Assembly (NCBI GenBank): GCA_047495785.1
Contig: JBLDXI010000020.1
Coordinates: 1,984,001-2,048,000 of the forward strand
Length of the DNA stretch: 64,000 bases
Reading direction: 5' to 3'
DNA from: Lepidodermella squamata
Taxonomy: Eukaryota; Animalia; Gastrotricha
The position numbers and the translations under genes were made by a program. Below, piece by piece: positions 2,320 through 23,800 of the stretch. Each line of letters begins with the position of its first letter. Positions within the stretch are counted from its first letter, which is position 1. Under the pieces are notes generated by a model. That model saw only the letters and a program-made list of their open reading frames with translations. It ran no database searches and was not told the DNA's origin.

Positions 2320-2586
2320 GTTTTTCGAGAATTTTCCTCTTTTGTAAACATAAGAAATTGAATGGCTATGTCGACCTGAATAATTAATAGCTTTATGTGA
2401 CCTCCATCTTTATGATTATCCACAAAGGTTCGGTCATTATATTGCCCTCATGGGTATCATTAAACAACAATTTGGGTCAAATCACATTTCTTAACAACAT
2501 TGCGTTCATCTTCAAGTGCAAAAAGCAATGGGGAAAATAGGATCGAAAAAATAGTGACTCATCGAAATTAAACAATAATATTATTT

Positions 2587-3588
2587 TTATTGCATCTTTT
2601 TAGCATAAACATCAATAAGTTCCATTTGTTCAGAAATAACCGTCCAAAAAGCTGTCAGACTCGCGTCATCAATCTCTGACTGAAATCCACCACGATGTTC
2701 GATAATTTCAATGAAAAATGAAGTACCATCGATCAACGGATGGCATAATTTCTGTAAAATGGTTTCTTGGGGTCTTTTATCATTTAAATCAATCAGGACA
2801 CCAAGATCTTTCAATTTTTCGAAATCCGATAGCTCGCTAAAATTCTTGTTATCATAGTAGGATTCAGGTGGAATTGATTGAAAGGAGACTCCGCCTTGCT
2901 TCAACGCTGAGATGGCATAGGTAATATTCTTCACTCCCATTGCAATGTGGTAGAGCCCAAGTTCTTTGGTTGTTAGCTCAGTGAGAACAATTGAGAACGA
3001 CTTGTTACACCCAGGTGCAATTAGGATTTGTTGATGAGCGCCGGTATCTCCTTCAATTGCTTTGAAGCCGAAAACTCGCTGATACCAAGCGATAACTTGC
3101 GGCGAGCTTCCTTTACTCAGGGCAAAAGCAATGTGGTCGATATGCGTAAATGTACCCTCGAACGATAGATTTGAGTGGGTTTGGTCGAAATTCGGTGAAA
3201 AAGAGCCTTTGTAAGAGCCTTTCTCAATGAGCGAATGAGTGACATTCTTGACGCAAGATTCAACACTCAGTTTTCGAACTAGTCCATTGTTATCTTCGAT
3301 AGTCTCCGAATTGATGATTTCGATATTTTCACATCTTAGATGGCCATCCATAGCTGCCAGATCGTTGACCTCAAACGTCACATCGATCATCAAGTCGTTA
3401 GACCATTGACTCTTCGGATTGAATTCCGAAATCACAAAATAAATTTCATTGCTTGCCAAAACAGTTTGACGTAGCCCTGAACTGTCTCGACGAGCGACAG
3501 CCGTGAAGGCGTACTGATTCGTGAGCTGTTCGACGACAGTGTCGGCTTGAGTTGTTGCAATCTCGACGTGGTGCAGTCTAGTTATCAT
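2587..3588 (-). CDS. Divergent HPPD/HPDL-family (VOC fold) dioxygenase paralog, 333 aa, intronless
   Basis: Collinear with the adjacent HPDL-like ORF (RLHHVEI, HIDHIAF, YHIAM, FFIEIIE). It has internal deletions and lacks the GFGxGN motif. Confidence 0.85.
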   Translation of the reverse strand: MITRLHHVEIATTQADTVVEQLTNQYAFTAVARRDSSGLRQTVLASNEIYFVISEFNPKSQWSNDLMIDVTFEVNDLAAMDGHLRCENIEIINSETIEDNNGLVRKLSVESCVKNVTHSLIEKGSYKGSFSPNFDQTHSNLSFEGTFTHIDHIAFALSKGSSPQVIAWYQRVFGFKAIEGDTGAHQQILIAPGCNKSFSIVLTELTTKELGLYHIAMGVKNITYAISALKQGGVSFQSIPPESYYDNKNFSELSDFEKLKDLGVLIDLNDKRPQETILQKLCHPLIDGTSFFIEIIEHRGGFQSEIDDASLTAFWTVISEQMELIDVYAKKMQ

Positions 3589-3992
3589 TTAACACGATTG
3601 CGGTCTCAGAATTATTACGAAAAAACTGGGGGAGAGTTTTTGTAAGTAGAACGTGGCCGTTAAATCTCCTAATTCTATTAAGAATTCGCGTGGTACCTAT
3701 GTTTATGACAATTTCCAGGCTTTATTCTCGGCCTAAGTAAAGAGGAGTAGCTGTGCTATATGGTAGCCAACTCGATTTGACGGCTTCAACAACAACACGT
3801 ATTACACGGCGATTGTAGCCCTTTCATATGACATGTCACAGGGTCATGAGTATAAGGCGTATGAAATGAAAAAGCACTATAATGGTACCGTGTAAAAGCC
3901 CTTATTCACAATAAGCGGGTAACTAAACAGTCCGAAAGCGAACTTAAAAATCAAATCGTTTCAGTTAATTAGAAGATGGGTCTAATAATTCA

Positions 3993-5102
3993 TTAATCCT
4001 GTATAGCTTCAGCCCGCTCCAGTTGAGTGACCAAAGCCCTCCACAGAGCCGCGACATTGCCAGCCCCGAATCCCTTCGCGCCACCACGTCGCTCGATAAT
4101 CTCGAAGAAAAACGTCTCCCCAGTTCCTTCGTTCAAAGGTCGGCAAAACCTCTGCAAGATGAACTGACCAAATATGTCGCCCAACTGTTCGACGTCAATC
4201 AAAACCCCGAGCCTTATCAATTCAGCAACGTGGTTGAATTCCGAAAATGCCGTTTCCAGAGCTGTGTAATAAGCGTCAGGGGGATTAGGGACAAATTTCA
4301 CCCCAGCCTGCTCCAGCCAAGATAGTGTTTTCAAAATATTCGGAGCAGCCAAAGCAACGTGATGAACTCCAGGACCGCCATGGTGTTTTAAAAACAAATT
4401 TATGTTATTTTTCTCCCCATCTCCATTCGTTAAAACCGGCTCAGATAAGGCGAATGAAAAGGCAGGCTTGCAACGAGGTGCGATGATAGCTCGTAGCCTT
4501 AGTCCAGTATCTCCAGCCATTACGACATAACCATCCTTCTCAGTATCTTCAGGGTTAGCCAACATTCGCTTGAAACCTAGAACTCGACCGTACCATCTGA
4601 TGACTTCGTCCGATGCGCCTTCAGGCAATCCAAGCGCAACATGATCGATGTGCGAGTACAAATCTGATCTTGGTCTTGGATCTATAGAGCCAAAATAAGG
4701 CAAAAATCGTCCTTTATATTTTCTTTTGTCGATGAGAGTATGAACGACATCACCGACGCAAGATTGTATCGTGAGTTGTTGAACTATTCCATTTTCATCG
4801 AAATTCGTTTCGGAATGGATGATGTCGACATTTTGCGATTTCAAATGACTTTCTACTTCCGATAGGTCATCGACTTCGAACGCCACATTGTAGACAGAAT
4901 TGGGAGCTGCAAATGGGTAGAATTTTCCTGTATTAGCCTCGGTCACGATGACGTAGACTTTGTTGTAGGCCAAGACAGCTTGATGAATTCCTGAAACAGT
5001 ACGATGACCTATCGGAGTTAGGCCATACTGCCTAATCAATTGATCGATAACAAGTCCAGGCTCGGACGCTCCGATCTCAATGTGGTGCAATTTTTGGATC
5101 AT
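3993..5102 (-). CDS. HPDL: 4-hydroxyphenylpyruvate dioxygenase-like protein, intronless
   Basis: Fe-ligand motifs HIDHV, GGPGVHHVA and FFFEIIER, with C-terminal GFGAGNVAALWRAL typical of the HPDL branch. Met at 5102 aligns with the paralog start; the ORF extends upstream to 5267. Confidence 0.88.
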   Translation of the reverse strand: MIQKLHHIEIGASEPGLVIDQLIRQYGLTPIGHRTVSGIHQAVLAYNKVYVIVTEANTGKFYPFAAPNSVYNVAFEVDDLSEVESHLKSQNVDIIHSETNFDENGIVQQLTIQSCVGDVVHTLIDKRKYKGRFLPYFGSIDPRPRSDLYSHIDHVALGLPEGASDEVIRWYGRVLGFKRMLANPEDTEKDGYVVMAGDTGLRLRAIIAPRCKPAFSFALSEPVLTNGDGEKNNINLFLKHHGGPGVHHVALAAPNILKTLSWLEQAGVKFVPNPPDAYYTALETAFSEFNHVAELIRLGVLIDVEQLGDIFGQFILQRFCRPLNEGTGETFFFEIIERRGGAKGFGAGNVAALWRALVTQLERAEAIQD

Positions 5103-5359
5103 AGCTGAACAATGTAATAATTCACGCCCCAATTTTTGCCCTGGACAGAACTCGGTCACTTTTTTTAGCCTAATGCCTGCCAAAATTTTAGATGTTGACA
5201 TTCCAGCGTTTTCTCGCCCATTCTGTTTTCGACTTGTTGACATTTCAAAATGTAGACTTGAGAACAAACAAGGGCTTTGAAAAGATCGCGCACCTGGAAA
5301 AGTTCTCCAATTCTAGTAAATCAACTGAGGTGCCCAGGGTTGTGCAAACACATTTTTTG

Positions 5360-5380
5360 CCGGAAGTTGGTGTATAAAAG
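5360..5380 (+). promoter_or_regulatory. TATA box (TATAAAAG, 5373-5380) and ETS-like CCGGAAGT in the short divergent intergenic region
   Basis: Consensus TATA about 65 nt upstream of the methyltransferase ATG. Only about 340 bp separate the head-to-head HPDL and methyltransferase starts. Confidence 0.5.
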
Positions 5381-5444
5381 CGGGCGAAATCTTGATTTTC
5401 GAACATACCAACATCCTCGCAAGTCAAATTTTCAGCCTTGAAGA

Positions 5445-6509
5445 ATGGTGCTCGACCATCCGCCGCATGCCTCTATGCGAGAGGACTACAATGACAACTC
5501 GAAGAACCAGCTTGTCATGCTTAAAGACACGGCCGATTTCATCCGACTTGGTGTTAGGAGCCACAAGGGCCAGCTCCCGCCAAGCGACTTCCCATTCGTC
5601 ATCGTTGACTTTGGGGCAAGTACTGGCGAGAACAGCTCATGGGGCATGAATCTGATCATCTCGAAGCTGCGAGAAAAGTACGGTGAAGCTGCGATTCCGT
5701 CGATTCTGGTTATCCAAGAAGATGTCCCGCGTAACTATTGGGAGACGCTGTTCGACTACAACAACAAAAACATCACTTCTCTGACCCATCAAAATGCTGG
5801 TGTGATCCCTCTGGCAGCTGGTCGAAGCTTCTATTACAAGGTTCTGCCGGATAACTACGTTCAATTCGCGCTTTGCACGACTTCGGTTCACTGGATGTCG
5901 AAGAACCCGGTTAGCAGGATGCCCGCTGATTACATCTACAACGACGAGATTGTGGCTAAGTTCAAGAAACAAGCCGACCACGATTGGCGTAAATTTGTGA
6001 CCCTGCGATCGAAAGAGCTTGTCAAGGGTGGTATTTTGGTTGCCAGCGTCCTGACGTGCCGCGATGTTCAGCATCGAATGTACGAAGTTGCCTACAACGC
6101 TGCTGAGGAACTTGTTAAGCAAGGCGTCATGAATAAGGAAGAACATGAAAGGTTCCACGTCCCCTTCGTTTGGCGAACGGTAGAAGATATTGCGAGTTGC
6201 AGTGATCTCTACAAAGAACTTGGTCTCGAGGTTCTGGCTCTAGGCAATCTACCGGATAAGCCTCATTTCCTGTACGAACGATACCAGAAGCACCAAGACC
6301 GTAAGCTGTTTGCCGAGGAGTATGGAGATGCACTTGCTGCGATTATGGAGGAGTTCTTTGAGGATGCGCACGATGACTCGCGAGCTGAACATCACATGGC
6401 GGAGATCAGTGCCAAGTTGTGGGTGATTGTCAAGCAGAAGATCTACGAGGATCCTGAGCGCTTCGGTATTCCGTGGAGTTTGCTGGGCGTGGTTTTCCGC
6501 AAGCTTTGA
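5445..6509 (+). CDS. SABATH-family SAM-dependent carboxyl/N-methyltransferase (Methyltransf_7), intronless
   Basis: Family motifs IVDFGASTGENS, EDVPRNYWETLF, AGRSFYYKVLPDN, SVHWMSK and QADHDWRKFVTLRSKELVKGG. Confidence 0.92.
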   Translation: MVLDHPPHASMREDYNDNSKNQLVMLKDTADFIRLGVRSHKGQLPPSDFPFVIVDFGASTGENSSWGMNLIISKLREKYGEAAIPSILVIQEDVPRNYWETLFDYNNKNITSLTHQNAGVIPLAAGRSFYYKVLPDNYVQFALCTTSVHWMSKNPVSRMPADYIYNDEIVAKFKKQADHDWRKFVTLRSKELVKGGILVASVLTCRDVQHRMYEVAYNAAEELVKQGVMNKEEHERFHVPFVWRTVEDIASCSDLYKELGLEVLALGNLPDKPHFLYERYQKHQDRKLFAEEYGDALAAIMEEFFEDAHDDSRAEHHMAEISAKLWVIVKQKIYEDPERFGIPWSLLGVVFRKL

Positions 6510-7544
6510 AAAAAATCGAATCAATGCCTGAAAAACAGACAGAAGAAACTGATGACAAATGCTATTTTCACATATGTTTTCTGCCTATCTCATTTTATAA
6601 TTGATCGCACCCCTTAGAGAAAATCAACGGTAACTGACTTATAGATAGTGGAAATAAATAATAGAATAGTATTAGTAGCTCTTTCAGCCTGTTTGACAAT
6701 TTCATTATGTAGGTATCGTTTGAAGTCCACGCGTACCAAGAGGAACTTGCAACATCAATGTTATGTGTTGGCTACATGTTAATCAAGTCCAAAACGTGCT
6801 CTTTAGCTCTCTGGCATGCCCGCGCCCGACTGGGGAGCTCTGTTTTGTCTGTATGTATCGGGTCGCTTCAAATTCTGCCCGTACGCAACGTCTATGCCAG
6901 AGTTGTCAAAGGGCATGGCCGGGTTCGGGCGAGTACGGGTCTGGCTTCCGAAACCCGTCTTAAATTTCAAGTTATTCCGTAGCAAAACTTGATCTTGTAT
7001 CATCAACAATGCAAATTTTGAGTAGATTGTCTCTTTGAAGTTTTTGAGCAACGAGAACCAGACTTTCGTGTGATTTTTCTCTATCGGGCCGGGCCTCGAT
7101 TATTTGACCAATGATTTTTCGATAACCCTGGTCTATGCTAAATCGACTGATTTTAAACAACTCTCGCACGAGTGAACTCAAGCAACCGCAGGTGCCAACA
7201 TATTATATAACAAAAATAATAGAAGTAATATAGGATTAATATATACCAATAATAGTAGGTAAATATTATTGGTTAAACTAATAGATTATAGAAAATGTTC
7301 TTAATAAGTGAGATTTGTCTGCAATCGGGAGAAAACCCCTTACATTTTTGAACTAGTCTGTAATATTAAGACGGACACCGTGCCATTGCTCGCAAAAGCA
7401 GCTGGGCTGAGAAAGCCACGCAAATTAAAGCAAATATTAAAGCGCGCACAAATGTTCGCCGGCGTGCACAACAATGCAGTCCTATTAGGACAGAACATGT
7501 ATTTGGCCTAGGTCATAGAGAAAAAGTCGTGTCTTGTCAATGTC

Positions 7545-10610: not shown

Positions 10611-13447
10611 ATGGATCTGCAGCTCAACATCGCGTTGACCACGCTTCAGATGCAGCCGGCTGATCGGCCGGATGCTTCCGTTGAATCTGTGGCTAGTTGG
10701 CTGCGTGAAAAAAGCAAGGTGTTCAAGCCTCTCGATGAAAGTGAGCAGAATTTTGATTGATTAATTCCTAATTTCGACTCATTTATTTCAGCAATTTTAA
10801 TGGACGTTGCTCGCAATTGTTCGCTTCAGATGTTCCCGGCTAACCATGTCCTAATCCGCCAGGGCGAAATCGGTGACTGGTTCGTTTCAAACCTTTTCGA
10901 ATTCGATTTGAAATTTCTAAGTTTTTTCTAGTTTTTACATCATTTTACAAGGCCAAGTTGCCGTTTACATTCACACCGACCTCGAACCCGGAAAATTAGC
11001 CGGTATTAAAGACGAACCTGTTAAGGAGGACACGAAACTTGGCCGGAAAAGTCACAGTCACGACGAGCCTGAGAAGAAGAAGGAGGAGAAACTTGATAGA
11101 AATCTATTTGGCAAGCACATCGTGACGTTGAGCATTGGCGCGAGTTTCGGCGAGTTGGCGCTCATCAATGATGATTGTATTCGTAACGCCTCGGTTATCA
11201 CCGACGAACCCTGTCACTTCATTTGCATCGATAGATCGCTTTATAATCGGTAAGGAAAAAATCATAAATTTTTACATTTTCGTGTGATTTGAATTTTCGG
11301 CTTTTCTCGGCTGAAAGATGACAGATTTAGGCAGCTACTTTATGAAAATTAAAAAAATTTAAAGCTGAATATTGAAATGTTTTTTTGTCAATTTTATTGA
11401 AAAATTAGGTCGCTAAAGGGCTTTCAGAAGCGAGATTTCGAAGATCGTAACAACTTCGTTGAAACACATCCGATATTTTCGCAATGGCCGTGGCGGCTCA
11501 AGCGGCAAGTGGCGATGAGTTTGGAGCGCGCAACTTTCGATTTCGACAGCTTGATTGCGAAACAAGGCAAACCTGCTAACACAGTCTTCTTCATTTTCAG
11601 GTAAATTTTCAACATATTTTACATTTAAATTACCGTATTTGTTCCAATAGTAGCCCATTGGACTACTACTAGTCACTAATAATCGCCCATCCCTAATAGT
11701 AGCCCAGGGTTGAGGGGTCAAGTTGGTTCGAAAACATGAAAAATGAACGATTCTTCACGGGAAATTAAATTTTCAAAATTTTCAAAACTTCGAGGTTGAA
11801 ATTTTAATAGCCCGGGCTGCTATAGGAACAAATACGGTACCTATTTAAGTGTGAGAAATTCAGAAAAATTCGATATTTGCTGTGTGCGCACCCTAAATTT
11901 TGGTTCCAGCACTGAATTTGACGTTCCAGCAATTATTGATCCGATATCGATTGCAGTGATTTTTCCGATATTGCCAATGTTAAAAATTTATCTTAAATCA
12001 AATGGGGTTCCAAAAGGCTCTGGTGGAATCATTATCGATCAAGGCAGATAGATAAAAATCGGAAAAATTCAGTGCTCGAACCTCAATTTGAGTTGGGCAA
12101 ATTTCATCCAATTTTATGATTTTAAAAGTATTAAGCTGGATTTTTTATTTTTCCAACATTTTTTGTATTTTGTATTCCGTTTTAAGGGGAACAGCGAGAA
12201 TGAGCTACAACACTGCCGTGATGCATGCGTCTAGTGGCGGCATAGTACCTCGACCCTCGATCAACTACGACACCGGTTCCAGTTCCAGCAACTCGTTAAT
12301 GGTGAATGGCAACGCGATGCGCGGGCGCACTGGTTCCACCGCCGGCACCTCCCTCAACACGCAATCCCCCAACAGCAGCGGCACCCCATCGACGCAGCAG
12401 CGCATCATCGAACTGTGCTCGATCACAAACGGCGAGGCTATTGGCGATTTAGAAATGTTCTACCCCATCGATTTTTACCTGTTTACAACAGTAGCGGCGG
12501 CGCCGACGGAAGTGCTGTCGCTAAGCCAGAAAAACATGACCCGATTCCTGGAGAATAAGACAATATCGAAAATGATGTGCGAGCTGTTATCGCACGCTTA
12601 TTACCGGCTGGCAGATCGCGTCGATCGCAATATCAAATGCTCGATTTTGAACGTGATTTTCGCCAATATGAAGCAGATTGTTGACTGTTACGAGGCGAAG
12701 CGTGAACAAGAGGCGGCGAATAGACTGAAGCGGCAAGCTCGCAAGGCGAACCTGCAATCGGCCGGCGCCAAGGGCACGGCTACGCCGCGCGCCGGCTCTT
12801 ATTCGCAGGCGAGTAATCGCAACACAGTAACACCTGTTGCACCCGCCTCGAGTGCGTTCCGGCGATTTTTGACGAAGGACGACGATGCTGAAACAACGCT
12901 ACAATACGTGCCAGTTCAGCATGATAGTAACAACAACAACAACAACAATGATGACGATGAGGATGACATCCCGCCCGAGGCTAGGGAACGCGTTTTCCCC
13001 GACTGGGAGACCAGTGATGAAAGGTTAACCGCTCTTGAGGAGCGAATTAGAAGGTTCAATACCGAATTATTCGCGGAAGACGAGGGCGGGCCGAGCACGA
13101 GGCTGCCGATTAACATCACGCAGCCGGGTGCCAAGTTGAAAATTCCGTCGATTGAAGCGTCGAATAAGGTGGTGGAAATGCGGCGTTATACAGTGTCGGG
13201 CCAGCAGGGTGCACCCAGGGCTGGCACCCTGGTCAAGGTGCGCCTTGCTAAGCCTGGCGGTGTTGGCGTTGTTAGGTCGCATACGCCATCGCCGCCGAGT
13301 GAAACCAACAGCGCTAGTGGCAAAAGGCCGACGACGAACAACCAGCCAGTAGCTCAGCGTAATGTTACGTTTTCTCGCGAAGTCACTGTCAATGCGATCG
13401 ATGAAGAACGGCCTCGCAGTTTTTCGCTATCTGGGCGTCAAAAATAG
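10611..13447 (+). CDS. Cyclic-nucleotide-binding domain-containing protein (CNBD1/2-like, two cNMP domains), 5 exons
   Basis: Exons at about 10611-10740, 10792-10879, 10932-11249, 11409-11600 and 12187-13447 join in frame through GT-AG introns. They give LIRQGEIGDCFYIILQGQV and SFGELALINDDCIRNASV, plus a second domain IAKQGKPANTVFFIFRG...GEAIGDLE. Confidence 0.85.
11633..11837. mobile_element. MITE with CCGTA termini and TA target-site duplication (Tc1/mariner/pogo-type), intronic
   Basis: TA-ccgtatttgttccaatagtagccc ... gggctgctataggaacaaatacgg-TA. Confidence 0.75.
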
Positions 13448-17831: not shown

Positions 17832-20800
17832 ATGTCGGCCAGCAGCGGCGGCTGGTGCCGAGCCGCGTCGAGCAATAATTCTTACAACGATCAAACCTTA
17901 TTCATAACTGCCTATTATTTTTCAACGAAATTTCCACATTCACCACCATCATCAACGCCGAATTATTTCCTCAAAACTGCTGCAGTCAATTTTTTGTTGT
18001 TACTCATCCTGGTTTTGTCTACGCCTGTTCAAGCTGGCATTCCTGTGTTGCAACCAACTGGCGCCGATGACCTGATTCGATTGTCGATCGGCCCGACGCC
18101 TGTTACCGGGCGCAATTTTTCATCGGCGCCTATCGACCAAAACACGTTGCCAGGCGTTGTCGTATTCGTCTCACCGCGAACCGCCCTCATTTCTCACGAG
18201 TTAGCCAACCGTGTCGTGGCTGATCTCCGCCAGAGGAATGAAGTCGAATTTCCTATCCGATTACGGAAAGTGAAGGTAAAAATTCAATTATTTTAAGGTG
18301 GAATTTTTAATATTTTTTTAATTTTTGATAATTTAATTCTAATATTTTAATATTTTTAATAATTAATAATTTTTTATTTTTTTAGTGCGATTTTGCCGAG
18401 GCTGTGAAAGCGGTGTATGAAATGTCGACGCTTGAATTTCGGACCTCTTTTTTGTTAACCGACCTTTGCCCCGATGTCAACTTCCGCCTCAGTCAAGTGC
18501 TCAAATACCGAAATATTGCTTTGGTAAAAAAAATTACAAATTTGTGAGTGTTTTTTTCTTGAGGACTCGATTTTTTTTTTCAGATTACTGCTTCCGACAA
18601 TAACCCGGCTTTCCGTGATCGATCCATGTATGCGAATACGTTTTCTGTTGTCCCGTCGACCGAGTCGCTCAGCAAGGCTACGCTCAAATTTTTGCAGTTG
18701 AACGCGTGGAAAAAAATGCTACTCGTTTACGATGCACATACTCCGTCGTCAAGTTATTACTCACTCGTAAGTCTTAGTTTTGCTTTTATCCCTGGCGACG
18801 TCGGTTTTCTCTCAGCTGAACTAGTGCAAATTTATCGGGATTTTAATTTCGCCTGATTGCGATAGCTAAAATATGCGTGTGGGATGCGGGCAAAATGAAG
18901 ACAAATTTTACAGATGAGAAGCCATGTCAGTAAAATAATGTCCGCATGAGCCAGATTCAATATACCGGTCGAATGAAAATATAACATTGGGATAAAAATT
19001 AATGAAAATTTTAAAATGGTTAATGAAACAATGACTTCTAAGATTAAAATCAAACGTTAACGAAAAATTCGTGAATTTTCAAAAAAATTCCAATTACCAT
19101 AATGAAAAATATCAAATGAGGCTCCGGGACTAAATTCAAGTGTGCAATAAAAGGTGCGTCGCGAAACGTAATTTAAAGTGTCGCGCAAGTGCGTATTACG
19201 TGTCGCGCTTTCTTTAATTTGCGCGCATCTTTCTGTTTTGCGCGAAGCTTGTCTGAGACCCATTTTTTGCGATCTCTGCTGGTGTCATTTTTTGATCATT
19301 AATGATGCGACGTATACATTTTGTATTCTAGCTACATTTGAATATAAACATCTGTTGTATCGGAAAAATCACTGATTTGTTAAAATCGATACGAGAAATC
19401 GATATCGAATTGTAAATTGTAAAGTAACCGCCGATATTTCAGCTGGGTCGGATATTTAAGGATTTTTAGATTTTAAGGAGACATTAAAATTTACTATAGA
19501 AAACCCATTCCAGTCCTGAAACCCTAATTTAAGGTGGGCGCTATTCATACCTATCCAATATTCATTTCGATGAATTCATCAAAAATTGCGCAGAAAATGA
19601 AAAAAATGAGTTTGTCCTCTCTATTCTATTGATTTATTGTTTTTTCAGATTTCCTCTTCTTTATTGAGATATCTGGAATATCAAGATGTCGAAGTAGCGC
19701 GACCAATTGAGAATAAAGTGTTCGAAAGCACGATCGAACGCATCCAACAAAGCGGCTTTAAGGTCATTTTTCTACTCATGCCATCCGATGAAATCGCCGA
19801 ATTTTTGTGCCGCTACCTGCGCAACACGCCCGATGTCGCTGTAGCGCGTTTCGCTTGGCTGATTCACTCGGACGTGGCTGATATTCCTATCGAAATCATG
19901 CTGCAAGAAACATGCCCCGGTGTAGATAATTTGAAATTACTGACCGCTTTTGCGATTCGATACGCGCCGTACGATATGATGAACAACGAAACTACCGTAG
20001 TCCTGCCCCATCCGAGTCGAATCATGTGCTCAGACCGCGGCCGGTTGCGGCCTCGCGACACGATGGCAGAGCAGTCAGGCGGGCTTGAATTTGTCACCCA
20101 TCCTGATGTGTCCCATTTTTACCAGACTAATACATCGCAGTTGATGTCGCACTACTACCGTTGCTACTACTACGACGGTTTGATATCGATTTTCAAGGCC
20201 CTTCGAGCCACCCTGGTCTTCAACAGCGGCAATGAACTGCACGACCCGACGGCTCAGATGTCAAATTACATGAATTTACGCATCGATGGCCGAACGGGTG
20301 CGATAAGGTTCAGCCGCACGACTAGCGAACGTTTGGGACAAGTTGAAGTTGTTCAGTTGGCGAATGGTAGACCAAGGTGGATTGTGGTCTATGACTTATC
20401 GGGGACAGCTATTGCAGCCCGGCATTTCCGTCAAATCCGCTGGCCTCGTGAGTTTTTTTACCGAATTTGTCAAAAGGGAATCAACATTTTAAAAAAATCG
20501 ATATTCTCAGATAATTACGAAAAATATATTTTTTAGAAAAAAATCGAAAATTTTAATTTCTTATATATTAAGTACATTCTTTGACTTCGTTGCCTTTATG
20601 TTTCATTCCAGAATTATCTAAAATAATTAGCGGCTTGAATAGCGTGGCGTCTCGCAGCGTGGCTGAGTCACTGACTGAACGCTTGTGGGTCTTAATTAAT
20701 TAACAATTGGTAGCTCAGATGAATTTAATTGCTTACAAGCGATGAAGTTATATTTTTTGCTAAATTACTGCCCTGGCTATATTTTTCACCAACAGGTATC

Positions 20801-23800
20801 TAATAATTTAATTGATTTTTTATAAATTTTTCCAATTATTTCCTAGCAATATTCAAGATACCAAATTCCAGTTAAAATTCGAGCTAAATTTCTTGTTTTT
20901 ATTACTGAATTTCTAGCCATAAAGCAGCGTTTTATGTATGAAGAGTCGAAAGTTTAGTCACGCGCCGAAGCCCTTGAAAAATTTATTGCCCAACATGAAA
21001 GTTGTATTCACGCGCACTAAACCTGAGGCGTGCGCGCACTCATTTTTGCGCGCGCCTCGTTGACCCATTTAAACTGAGAGCGTTTATTGTATTGTTTATT
21101 TATTGTCGTTATTCTTTATTTTGCGCGCCCGCGCAATAAAACCAGGCGGCCGTCCACCGCTCGACAGCGTCATCCGCCGCGACGAACTGCTGTCAGTGCC
21201 GCTCGAACTTTTAGCGGCTTTTTCAGCCGCGGCCCTGCTCGGCATCGCCGCGTCCATCGGCATTCTCATAACCAACATTCGCTTTCGTGGCCACAGGTAA
21301 GAATGGCTAAAACTCGAAAAATACTTGCATAAACCATTCATATGAATTGGCCATCGTCACAATTAAAAACGCACCTGTTCATCCACCTTATGATTTTTAT
21401 TTTTCATACACTGCAACAAATCGCGTGGAATTAAATATGGGCCATCAAAGTTACATCAAAATGAGCAGCCCTAATTTGAACAATTTCATACTCATCGGAT
21501 CGTGCCTCTGCTATACGAACGTATTCTTCCACGGACTTGGCTCTGATCTGCTGGCGTCAACGCGGCTTTTCGAGGCTGTTTGCACCCTTGAGGCTTGGAC
21601 CTTACCTGTAGGATTCTCACTCGCTTTCGGCGCCATGTTAACAAAAACGTGGCGGGTTAATACGATTTTTCACAGCAGCGGCTTTAAACGCCAGGCGATA
21701 CCCGACAGCCGGCTAATTATGGTCATTTCGGGCTTTGTCGCCATCGATGTTGCGCTCAACATCATGTGGGTGCTGCTTGACCCACTACAACGCGAGGTGG
21801 CCATCACGCAAGCTCCGGTGCTGGCTAATGATGCCTACGAGACGACTTCCTTCATTGAGTACTGCTCGTCAAATTACGCACTCTGGTGGACGCTAGCCAT
21901 GTGGATTCCTAAAGGCGCACTACTCGTAAGTAAAATGTTACGAAAAACTCACTGACAAGTGAAAAATGGGTTTTTCAATTTCCGAAAAATGATTTTTAAG
22001 GTATATATCAATCGAATCGTCTTGTCTCGCTGATTCGTTTGATATATATCTCTAGTTACATGTGAAACACCCATTTTTCACTTATCAGTGCGTGATAGGT
22101 AGCTAATTAATCGATTTTGATCCTCATCAACGATGATTGCTGATTTGTGTGTATGTGTGCGATTTAATATTTTATAGATTTACGGCCTTGTGTTGGCGTG
22201 GAAGACGCGCGGCGTGCGTTTGGCCGCACTTAACGACTCTTATCAAATCGGCGTCTCAATTTACATCATCGTCGTGTTGTGCACGATCGGCGCGACAGCT
22301 CAGCCTATCTTCAAGACGAAAGTTATAATATCCTACTGCGTCCTGTCGACAACGCTCATTTTGTGTACCGTCATACCTGAAATAGTCATTTTTGTACCCA
22401 AAGTGAGTTTATATAGCGATTATATGCTTATTTTTACACATTAATTTATCGGCGATCTCAGCGCATCAACAACTAGTAAACAAGTAAACAAATCAGTCCC
22501 GCTAATCATCACTTTTGGCTCTATAGACTAAGGGAAAAGTGTGAATCAATTGCAAAATTGATTAATCTGTCGCTTTTGACCTTCAGGCTGAGCTACAGAA
22601 AATAAGCAATATTCTCTGCCAATTTTTTTATTTCTGTAATAATAAACATGGGCAGATTGTCTATTCTTGAAATTGTCTCCGCCTTCGTTAATCCTACCTA
22701 GACTACCCAGAAAGCCTGTTTTGTCTCTCCACGTCAGAAAATCGGGATAATTTATGGAAAATGACCCCCATCTGTAATATTTATAATTTTTATATTTTAA
22801 ATGATTTTGCATACATTTGTTAGTCTCATCAGCTTTCGGTTTAAATTATTGAACAGATTTTCGGAAAAATTCAACTTATTCCGATGCCGTTTTATCAGGA
22901 CACTCTAATAACTTATTAATTAGCATATATTTTTTAGAAGCTATTCATTGTCTATGATTTATAAAATCGAAAGCAGAATAACAAATTTTTGGAAGGTGAA
23001 AAATCGGGTAAATTCGGCCTGCATGAGAAAAACGCAAAAAGTGAACGCCTAAAATTGAGTTTTAGTTATCCAGGCCAGAAAATTAAAAAAAAATTGAAAA
23101 ATGAGAGGAAATCCTAAATTTACTGGGAAACTCAGAATTACCTTTTCCACATTTTTTTTTAAATTCAGAAATCTTTCTTTAACAATCTAAATCAAAATGA
23201 AAAAATTCTAAAAAAATCGCCAGCAATTTTTTAGCCAGCAATAGGGTCAAAAGAGTTTTCGGTTAAATTTCAAATTATACTCTCGCAGGTTTTGCCTCAA
23301 AGAGCGAGTATAAACAAGTTGTTTTCTTATCAGATCAAAAGCTCGCACCCCCTCTTGAACAAATTACAATATTTCTACGCGAATAAACATCGTGTATATC
23401 ATCGCTTTAAAAATTTAATTTTGTTCTATAGCTACTACGACTTTGGAAAGACCCGATTGGAGACCAGCGTATGTTGCGCGAAGAGATGAAACGAGCGACG
23501 AAATCGACGAACAGCGTCGCTAACGAGCTCGCTCGTCGTTACATTTCAAGCGAGGTACGATCACGGCGGCTTCGGCTAACCGAAGTCAACGACGATATCG
23601 GCAAACTTGAAACGCAACTGGCTCAACTCAACGACCCAGACGTGAAGACCGACATCTCGATATCACTGGCTATGGTCGCGATAGGGCCATCGCTTTTCAA
23701 CGTGACAATACCGCAGGCGAGTCACGTGCCGAGTGAGGCGACAATTGCGCATGAAACCACTGATCGGCCGCTTGTAGAATGTCCCTCATCGAATGGCTTA

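Follow-up and report, generated by a model that had tools for sequence, protein, structure and literature searches.

Two dioxygenase genes of the HPDL type, here named HPDL1 and HPDL2, lie beside a gene for a SABATH-like methyltransferase in the genome of the gastrotrich Lepidodermella squamata. We analysed the locus within a stretch of 64,000 nucleotides (C20:1,984,001-2,048,000, hereafter the window; GC content ~40 %) of a 3.26-Mb contig, and searches of the animal's own genome covered 121.2 Mb in 151 contigs. A scan for open reading frames (ORFs) found three uninterrupted ORFs, all of them intact enzyme genes (Table 1), while neighbouring genes, among them a class-C G-protein-coupled receptor (GPCR) gene at 19.6-22 kb, a pentameric ligand-gated ion channel (pLGIC) gene upstream and nuclear receptor genes, are split into several ORF pieces and so carry introns. 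The description in a first-pass annotation of three intronless enzyme genes in 3.9 kb among intron-bearing genes therefore holds.

Table 1. Features of the HPDL-methyltransferase locus (positions in the window).
Feature	Position	Strand	Description
HPDL2	2587-3588	-	333 amino acids (aa), intronless, strongly derived HPDL paralogue; from ORF scan, Pfam/NCBIfam, alignments and tree
HPDL1	3993-5102	-	369 aa, intronless HPDL paralogue with all family motifs
Divergent intergenic region	5103-5444		342 bp, holds a TATA box
Methyltransf_7 (SABATH-like) S-adenosylmethionine (SAM)-dependent carboxyl methyltransferase, predicted	5445-6509	+	354 aa, transcribed

The spacing of the divergent genes depends on where HPDL1 starts. 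Its ORF is open upstream to 5267 (3993-5267, minus strand; 424 aa from the earliest possible start), and homologues begin at the methionine at 5102 (MIQKLHHIEIG), which gives the length in Table 1. With this start, the start codons at 5445 and 5102 differ by 343 and leave 342 bases between them, in agreement with the ~340 bp first reported. In-frame ATGs are also found at 5201 and 5243; either one as the start would narrow the gap to ~200-240 bp, and the ORF before Met-5102 could then code for an N-terminal extension of 33-47 aa. Inspection of the intergenic sequence revealed a TATA box, TATAAAAG, at 5373-5380, in plus-strand orientation and 72 bp before the methyltransferase ATG.

Both minus-strand ORFs matched Glyoxalase/VOC domains in Pfam as well as the NCBIfam 4HPPD model TIGR01263, with 173.7 bits for HPDL1, aligned over its whole length, and 108.9 bits for HPDL2. 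These scores fall below the equivalog cut-off of 277, as expected because the two proteins are HPDL-type relatives of 4-hydroxyphenylpyruvate dioxygenase (HPPD). The best database matches of HPDL1, with no closer relative in the word search, were annotated HPDL proteins at just 31-35 % identity; they come from a nemertean, from molluscs, fishes and frogs, and from a sea anemone. Canonical HPPD (PDB 1T47, 1SQI, 3ISQ) and bacterial hydroxymandelate synthase (2R5V) share the fold and the metal ligands with the gastrotrich proteins (sequence E-values of 1e-20 to 1e-26 for HPDL1); however, HPDL1 and HPDL2 branch with animal HPDL, and a separate canonical HPPD is encoded elsewhere in the genome. In all, four HPPD-family genes were found there: HPDL1, HPDL2, a gene with a single intron on contig C74, and the canonical HPPD on C9, which carries the classic NEP, QH and GNF motifs and falls outside the animal HPDL clade.

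In a maximum-likelihood tree, the animal HPDLs form one clade (100/100) that includes HPDL1 and HPDL2. Within it, HPDL1, HPDL2, the C74 gene and a gene from a metagenome in ENA make up a gastrotrich clade (100/100) in which the C74 and metagenome genes are sisters (98/97). The last two were taken exon by exon, and their rows in the tree represent exon 1 only (~230-260 residues). Collinearity between the metagenome contig and C74 extends over ~11 kb and takes in an upstream kinase gene, which together with the tree identifies C74 as the conserved ancestral HPDL locus; the sister grouping also places the duplications behind HPDL1 and HPDL2 before the split of the two species. A sister relationship of HPDL1 and HPDL2 was not rejected by the approximately unbiased (AU) test (p = 0.226), which leaves room for one origin of the pair and a subsequent tandem duplication. 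The label "HPDL-type" given to both dioxygenases at the outset thus stands as far as the clade is concerned, with the caveat that the 333-aa copy is strongly derived. What sets the gastrotrich apart from other animals is the presence of additional, lineage-specific intronless paralogues beside the conserved, intron-bearing C74 HPDL.

The metagenome sequences themselves, ENA ERZ23486764 scaffold_4846 and two further environmental metagenome contigs, have 38 % GC and align collinearly with C74:639-651 kb, with a translated identity of 50-84 %. From this collinearity, a related gastrotrich-like animal is present in public metagenomes.

We then compared intron positions. In the HPDL genes of Actinia, Elysia and Lineus, an intron lies directly after the "..AExLPxxG" strand and before "xNQIxxFLxxH", and the sole intron of the C74 gene is at that same position; the intron is therefore ancestral to animal HPDL. 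It is missing in HPDL1 and HPDL2, which we infer to be derived, processed-looking copies, the product of either retroposition or intron loss mediated by cDNA. Neither gene shows a poly(A) remnant or a target-site duplication, as the events are too old (dS, the synonymous divergence, is saturated), and for the same reason the two routes cannot be told apart. The intron history also removes horizontal transfer as the cause of the intronless state of HPDL1 and HPDL2.

An intact 1237-aa Ty3/gypsy-type pol ORF (reverse transcriptase, RNase H, integrase) was found at C20:1,978,999-1,982,712, which is 1.3-5 kb before the window start. The element is possibly active as a retroelement.

HPDL1 and HPDL2 share with animal HPDL the two-VOC-domain fold and the His-His-Glu triad, and they differ in how much of the remaining active-site sequence each has kept. 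HPDL1 retains IDH and GGPGVHH (first and second His), FFEIIERRG (Glu) and LQRF, with the triad at H154, H248 and E334. Its NQIxxFLxxHGGPGxQH segment reads NNINLFLKHHGGPGVHH, and its C-terminal GFGAGNVAALW conforms to the GFGxGN[IV]xALW motif of animal HPDL. Human HPDL produces 4-hydroxymandelate for the coenzyme Q10 headgroup (PMC12422950, PMC13111500), and HPDL1 is most likely an Fe(II)-dependent dioxygenase of 4-hydroxyphenylpyruvate-type alpha-keto acids that, like the human enzyme, would yield a mandelate-type product. For HPDL1 as for HPDL2, the choice between a mandelate-type and a homogentisate-type product cannot be read with confidence from sequence.

In HPDL2, the triad residues (H152, H214 and E294) occupy invariant columns of a 25-sequence alignment. 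Unlike animal HPDL in general, HPDL2 lacks the ~20 residues that correspond to the near-universal NQIxxFLxxHGGPG segment before the second His ligand, has Leu in place of the family Phe in LLQxF, and reads EIDDAS (EIDDASLTAFW) where GFGxGN is expected; another ~19 residues are missing after FGFK. An AlphaFold2 (AF2) model of HPDL2 nonetheless reached a mean predicted local distance difference test (pLDDT) score of 86.6 and matched HPPD structures in Foldseek at a template modelling (TM) score of ~0.8, the C-terminal helix being the only low-confidence part. Over 652 bases, HPDL2 differed from a diverged haplotype in run X1 by 10 nonsynonymous and 9 synonymous changes, together with an in-frame 3-base indel, which corresponds to a rough ratio near 0.4; between HPDL1 and HPDL2 the ratio of nonsynonymous to synonymous divergence (dN/dS) is ~0.22, with dS saturated. 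Constraint on HPDL2 thus appears relaxed yet not absent, and we propose that this copy is either acquiring a new substrate or function, or is in slow decay.

In HPDL2, the gap of ~20 residues (around codons 205-210) begins precisely at the ancient exon junction, as might be expected if an alternatively spliced message had been copied, a suggestion that we offer as conjecture.

The third gene product matched PF03492 (Methyltransf_7) in Pfam with 108.3 bits against a cut-off of 29.8. Its AF2 model (pLDDT 90.3) found only Methyltransf_7 proteins among its best structural matches (TM 0.75-0.87), led in the PDB by the fatty-acid O-methyltransferase of Mycobacterium marinum (TM 0.87, E 2e-24), which was also the best match by sequence, and followed by plant loganic-acid, indole-3-acetic acid (IAA), salicylate and xanthine methyltransferases. 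The SAM-binding residues D55, G57, G61, D93, N97 and S128 (in DxGxxxGxNS, DxPxN and GRSFY) are present and invariant in a 30-sequence alignment, in which the carboxylate-holding Q22 (YNxxSxxQ) is nearly invariant and W150 (HW[LM]S) is invariant. W150 aligns with the Trp that follows Q154 of the mycobacterial enzyme, and we take Q22 and W150 to be equivalent to Gln25 and Trp151 of SAMT. The initial assignment to the SABATH methyltransferases is borne out by the fold and by the conserved carboxylate Gln and Trp positions, and the activity is likely that of a carboxyl O-methyltransferase.

The acid that is methylated is a different matter. Fold, SAM-binding motifs and the carboxylate Gln and Trp are common to the gastrotrich protein, the M. 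marinum enzyme (PDB 5F2K/5F2N; the TM score given above is to 5F2O) and the plant SABATH enzymes (SAMT 1M6E, IAMT 3B5I, LAMT 6C8R; TM 0.75-0.80). However, identity to the mycobacterial enzyme is 24 % over the Foldseek alignment, and the substrates of that enzyme are fatty and 3-hydroxy acids (3-hydroxydecanoate), not benzoates, while identity to the plant enzymes is only 16-23 %; no characterised enzyme exceeds 24 %. Unlike all of these, the gastrotrich protein belongs to a gastrotrich-plus-rotifer clade without a characterised member. Nothing favours aromatic over aliphatic acids for the predicted methyltransferase, nor specificity for benzoate or salicylate. The proposal that the product class of HPDL is the substrate class of its neighbour is plausible in chemical terms, but gains no support from the closest solved relative, which acts on fatty and 3-hydroxy acids.

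A query of the animal's own genome with the methyltransferase gave 32 matches. In the tree, 17 intact copies form one clade (98), joined by one metagenome protein and, weakly, by an Arcella transcript; its sister group (97) consists of bdelloid rotifer proteins, and a mainly bacterial clade stands apart. The family is thus lineage-expanded, with at least 17 intact copies in the gastrotrich. A word-index protein search with the methyltransferase had no match at E <= 0.001, and an exhaustive search of 1.8 billion protein representatives, JGI metagenome data included, returned no relative above 34 % identity. A search of the literature for SABATH enzymes of rotifers or invertebrates found nothing relevant.

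Two observations on the family tree stand by themselves. The transcript that nests weakly within the gastrotrich clade comes from a transcriptome of the amoebozoan Arcella intermedia, and could have entered that transcriptome from prey or as a contaminant, or else reflect a transfer. Several paralogues occur as near-identical pairs across contigs (C30/C50, C2/C135 and C30/C60); the C2/C135 pair is identical, the terminal branches of the other pairs are <=0.04, and the C30a and C50a ORFs encode 356 and 355 aa, respectively. Such pairs suggest haplotigs left uncollapsed in the assembly, or segmental duplications of very recent origin.

Among the three genes of the locus, the methyltransferase is the one for which transcription was detected. 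Contigs of run X2 extend over 5437-6618, which includes the whole methyltransferase ORF, with 0-1 differences and a word depth of 18-34. Given so few differences, it is the copy at this locus that is transcribed, and not its closest paralogue, which lies on contig C1 (79 % identical to the locus copy). Run X2 contains, as a loose end, a sequence that we presume to be the SMART cDNA adapter, in keeping with a cDNA-type run. The 11 variants listed within the methyltransferase ORF were all synonymous, and comparison with the C1 paralogue gave a dN/dS of 0.06-0.08 at a dS above 1, both of which point to strong purifying selection. The C1 protein is 84 % identical in amino acids, the similarity ends exactly at the ORF ends, and the gene has an IIGP-type GTPase gene on one side and an ANF-receptor gene on the other. 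The low dN/dS at this depth of divergence shows that a near-identical enzyme has long been maintained without an adjoining HPDL.

ANF-receptor/class-C GPCR-type genes are found downstream of both the methyltransferase at our locus (window 19637-21955) and the C1 paralogue (L021:2823-4046). This may only reflect two expanded families.

We next asked whether HPDL and methyltransferase genes are linked anywhere else. Contig C1 carries no HPDL, and the possibility that C1 holds a duplicated block of the whole locus was rejected, with similarity confined to the methyltransferase ORF. No HPDL lies beside any other methyltransferase copy in the animal's own genome or beside methyltransferase relatives in three other contigs, and no methyltransferase lies beside the C74 HPDL, the HPDL of the related species or the HPDL loci of Lineus, Elysia and Actinia. 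In sum, eleven additional loci and the whole own genome yielded no further HPDL-methyltransferase pair. These synteny tests covered paralogous loci, C74 and its metagenome counterpart, and other phyla; no close relative's genome was available for the orthologous locus. Run X2 gave no contigs over the HPDL genes (2482-5436), which is weak evidence from a single assembled run of modest size. The neighbourhood contains genes for a pLGIC, a gypsy-type retroelement, a class-C GPCR, a zinc-finger protein and nuclear receptors, and neither the 10 kb upstream nor the 24 kb downstream holds an aminotransferase, a hydroxy-acid oxidase, a decarboxylase or any other metabolic gene. Just two enzyme families adjoin at the locus, which could chemically supply successive steps of a pathway. 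The first-pass annotation had gone further and proposed a co-regulated tyrosine-derived pathway, to be checked by conservation of linkage and by co-expression. The pair was absent at every other locus examined, the one cDNA-type run covers the methyltransferase and neither HPDL, weak as that evidence is, and the neighbouring genes likewise lend the pathway no support.

Contamination as the source of the locus was rejected, since it lies among animal genes within the 3.26-Mb contig and has a normal depth of coverage in an independent DNA-type run.

Collectively, we consider it probable, if by no means certain, that these are three independent animal genes joined by duplication history and not a demonstrated pathway unit. 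An ordinary animal HPDL gene would have been copied in the gastrotrich lineage, with the ancestral C74 copy keeping its one ancient intron and its synteny, and the new copy would have lost all introns by retroposition or cDNA-mediated intron loss. This intronless copy was then most likely duplicated in tandem to give HPDL1, which would have stayed intact, and HPDL2, which would have lost the segment before the second His as well as the C-terminal gating motif and appears to evolve fast. The pair would simply have come to lie upstream of one member of an expanded SABATH-fold methyltransferase family with a TATA promoter of its own. Several points weigh against this reading. The specific adjacency of an HPDL and a methyltransferase gene is a priori unlikely, at roughly 1 % by an estimate that takes ~40 neighbour slots, 4 HPDL-like genes and an assumed 20,000 genes. 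It is also plausible that the HPDL product class, an aromatic 2-hydroxy acid and then 4-hydroxybenzoate, suits carboxyl methyltransferases, the closest solved of which accepts hydroxy-acids such as 3-hydroxydecanoate. Shared regulation would be possible at a head-to-head distance of 342 bp. Moreover, the missing HPDL contigs are weak evidence, coming as they do from one modest run, and the synteny tests drew on paralogous loci, the metagenome counterpart of C74 and other phyla.

An alternative is a genuine two-enzyme metabolic module, in line with the first-pass annotation. In such a module, HPDL1, and perhaps HPDL2, would start from 4-hydroxyphenylpyruvate or a related aryl-pyruvate and make a mandelate-type acid, and the methyltransferase would esterify this acid or a downstream benzoate, giving a volatile or membrane-permeant methyl ester for signalling or defence under a shared divergent promoter. 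The head-to-head arrangement, the full set of catalytic motifs in HPDL1, the retention of Gln22 and Trp150 in an expressed and constrained methyltransferase, and the binding of a hydroxy-acid by the nearest solved methyltransferase are all in its favour, as is the fact that these HPDL copies are extra to a conserved housekeeping-type HPDL at C74 and so free to take on a new role. We nevertheless judge a module of this kind unlikely. The linkage is seen nowhere else, the C1 methyltransferase is equally constrained without an HPDL neighbour, and the cDNA run that covers the methyltransferase at a depth of 18-34 has nothing for HPDL1 or HPDL2. In addition, the TATA box is unidirectional and points toward the methyltransferase, constraint on HPDL2 is relaxed, no gene for an aminotransferase, oxidase or decarboxylase lies close by, and with at least 17 methyltransferase copies, or ~20 loci, it is unremarkable that one of them has some acid-forming neighbour. 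In its most specific form, in which neofunctionalised HPDL paralogues and the methyltransferase are expressed from the 342-bp divergent region as a lineage-specific two-step module that is home-grown and not horizontally acquired, the idea seems to us quite doubtful. If true, it would place the locus among the very few metabolic gene clusters that an animal lineage has assembled out of genes of its own, and would provide the first substrate lead for the large SABATH-like methyltransferase family of gastrotrichs and rotifers.

Co-expression might also arise from position and involve no shared chemistry, if an intronless HPDL copy survived by landing upstream of an active methyltransferase gene and borrowing its open chromatin. 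HPDL1 and HPDL2 lack the ancestral animal HPDL intron, the intact gypsy-type ORF with its reverse transcriptase and integrase is within a few kb, and the methyltransferase is the demonstrably active gene among the three, all of which is consistent with a retrocopy on a neighbour's promoter. Yet the hallmarks of insertion are not visible at what is an old event, in which retroposition looks the same as intron loss, and HPDL transcription was not seen in run X2, leaving this explanation improbable. Least probable by far is a gene cluster acquired horizontally from bacteria or fungi. It would account for three intronless genes among spliced neighbours and for a best solved methyltransferase relative that is bacterial, with some relatives within bacterial contigs. 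However, both dioxygenases fall inside the animal HPDL clade with full support, beside an intron-bearing paralogue; the methyltransferase is a member of a family with at least 17 copies across the host genome, and this family groups with rotifer proteins and apart from the mainly bacterial clade; and the locus shows normal depth in the independent DNA-type run on a contig of animal genes. Horizontal transfer was thus rejected for the dioxygenases by tree and intron history and is unsupported for the methyltransferase. The locus resembles the horizontally acquired biosynthetic clusters of bdelloid rotifers in that a small freshwater invertebrate carries unusual small-molecule enzymes, some of them intronless, and differs from them in the animal descent of its dioxygenases, in the lack of a non-ribosomal peptide synthetase or polyketide synthase core and in comprising two enzyme families only (PMC11258130).

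Taken as independent animal genes, the three still provide two solid results. HPDL, a human disease gene of coenzyme Q headgroup synthesis, is triplicated in a gastrotrich, and one of the copies is without conserved elements of the active-site lid and is still predicted to fold. The gastrotrich also has an expanded family of SABATH-fold methyltransferases that is transcribed and maintained by selection, within an uncharacterised clade common to gastrotrichs and rotifers. As members of known enzyme families, the HPDL paralogues and the methyltransferases are unsurprising in kind, and they should be useful for enzymology.

Other ORFs in the window were also noted. Two paralogous small ORFs at 1387-1860 and 2041-2319, both on the minus strand, encode 157 and 92 aa with hydrophobic N-termini and have in common an acidic motif, SEEDDGYVPQAD.G.D.G..SIFA; neither ORF has a Pfam family. 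They may represent a secreted acidic peptide or protein family. Contigs of run X2 cover 1419-1552 at low depth and with ~91 % identity. Finally, an uninterrupted ORF of 443 aa, likewise without a Pfam family, extends over 12116-13447 on the plus strand.

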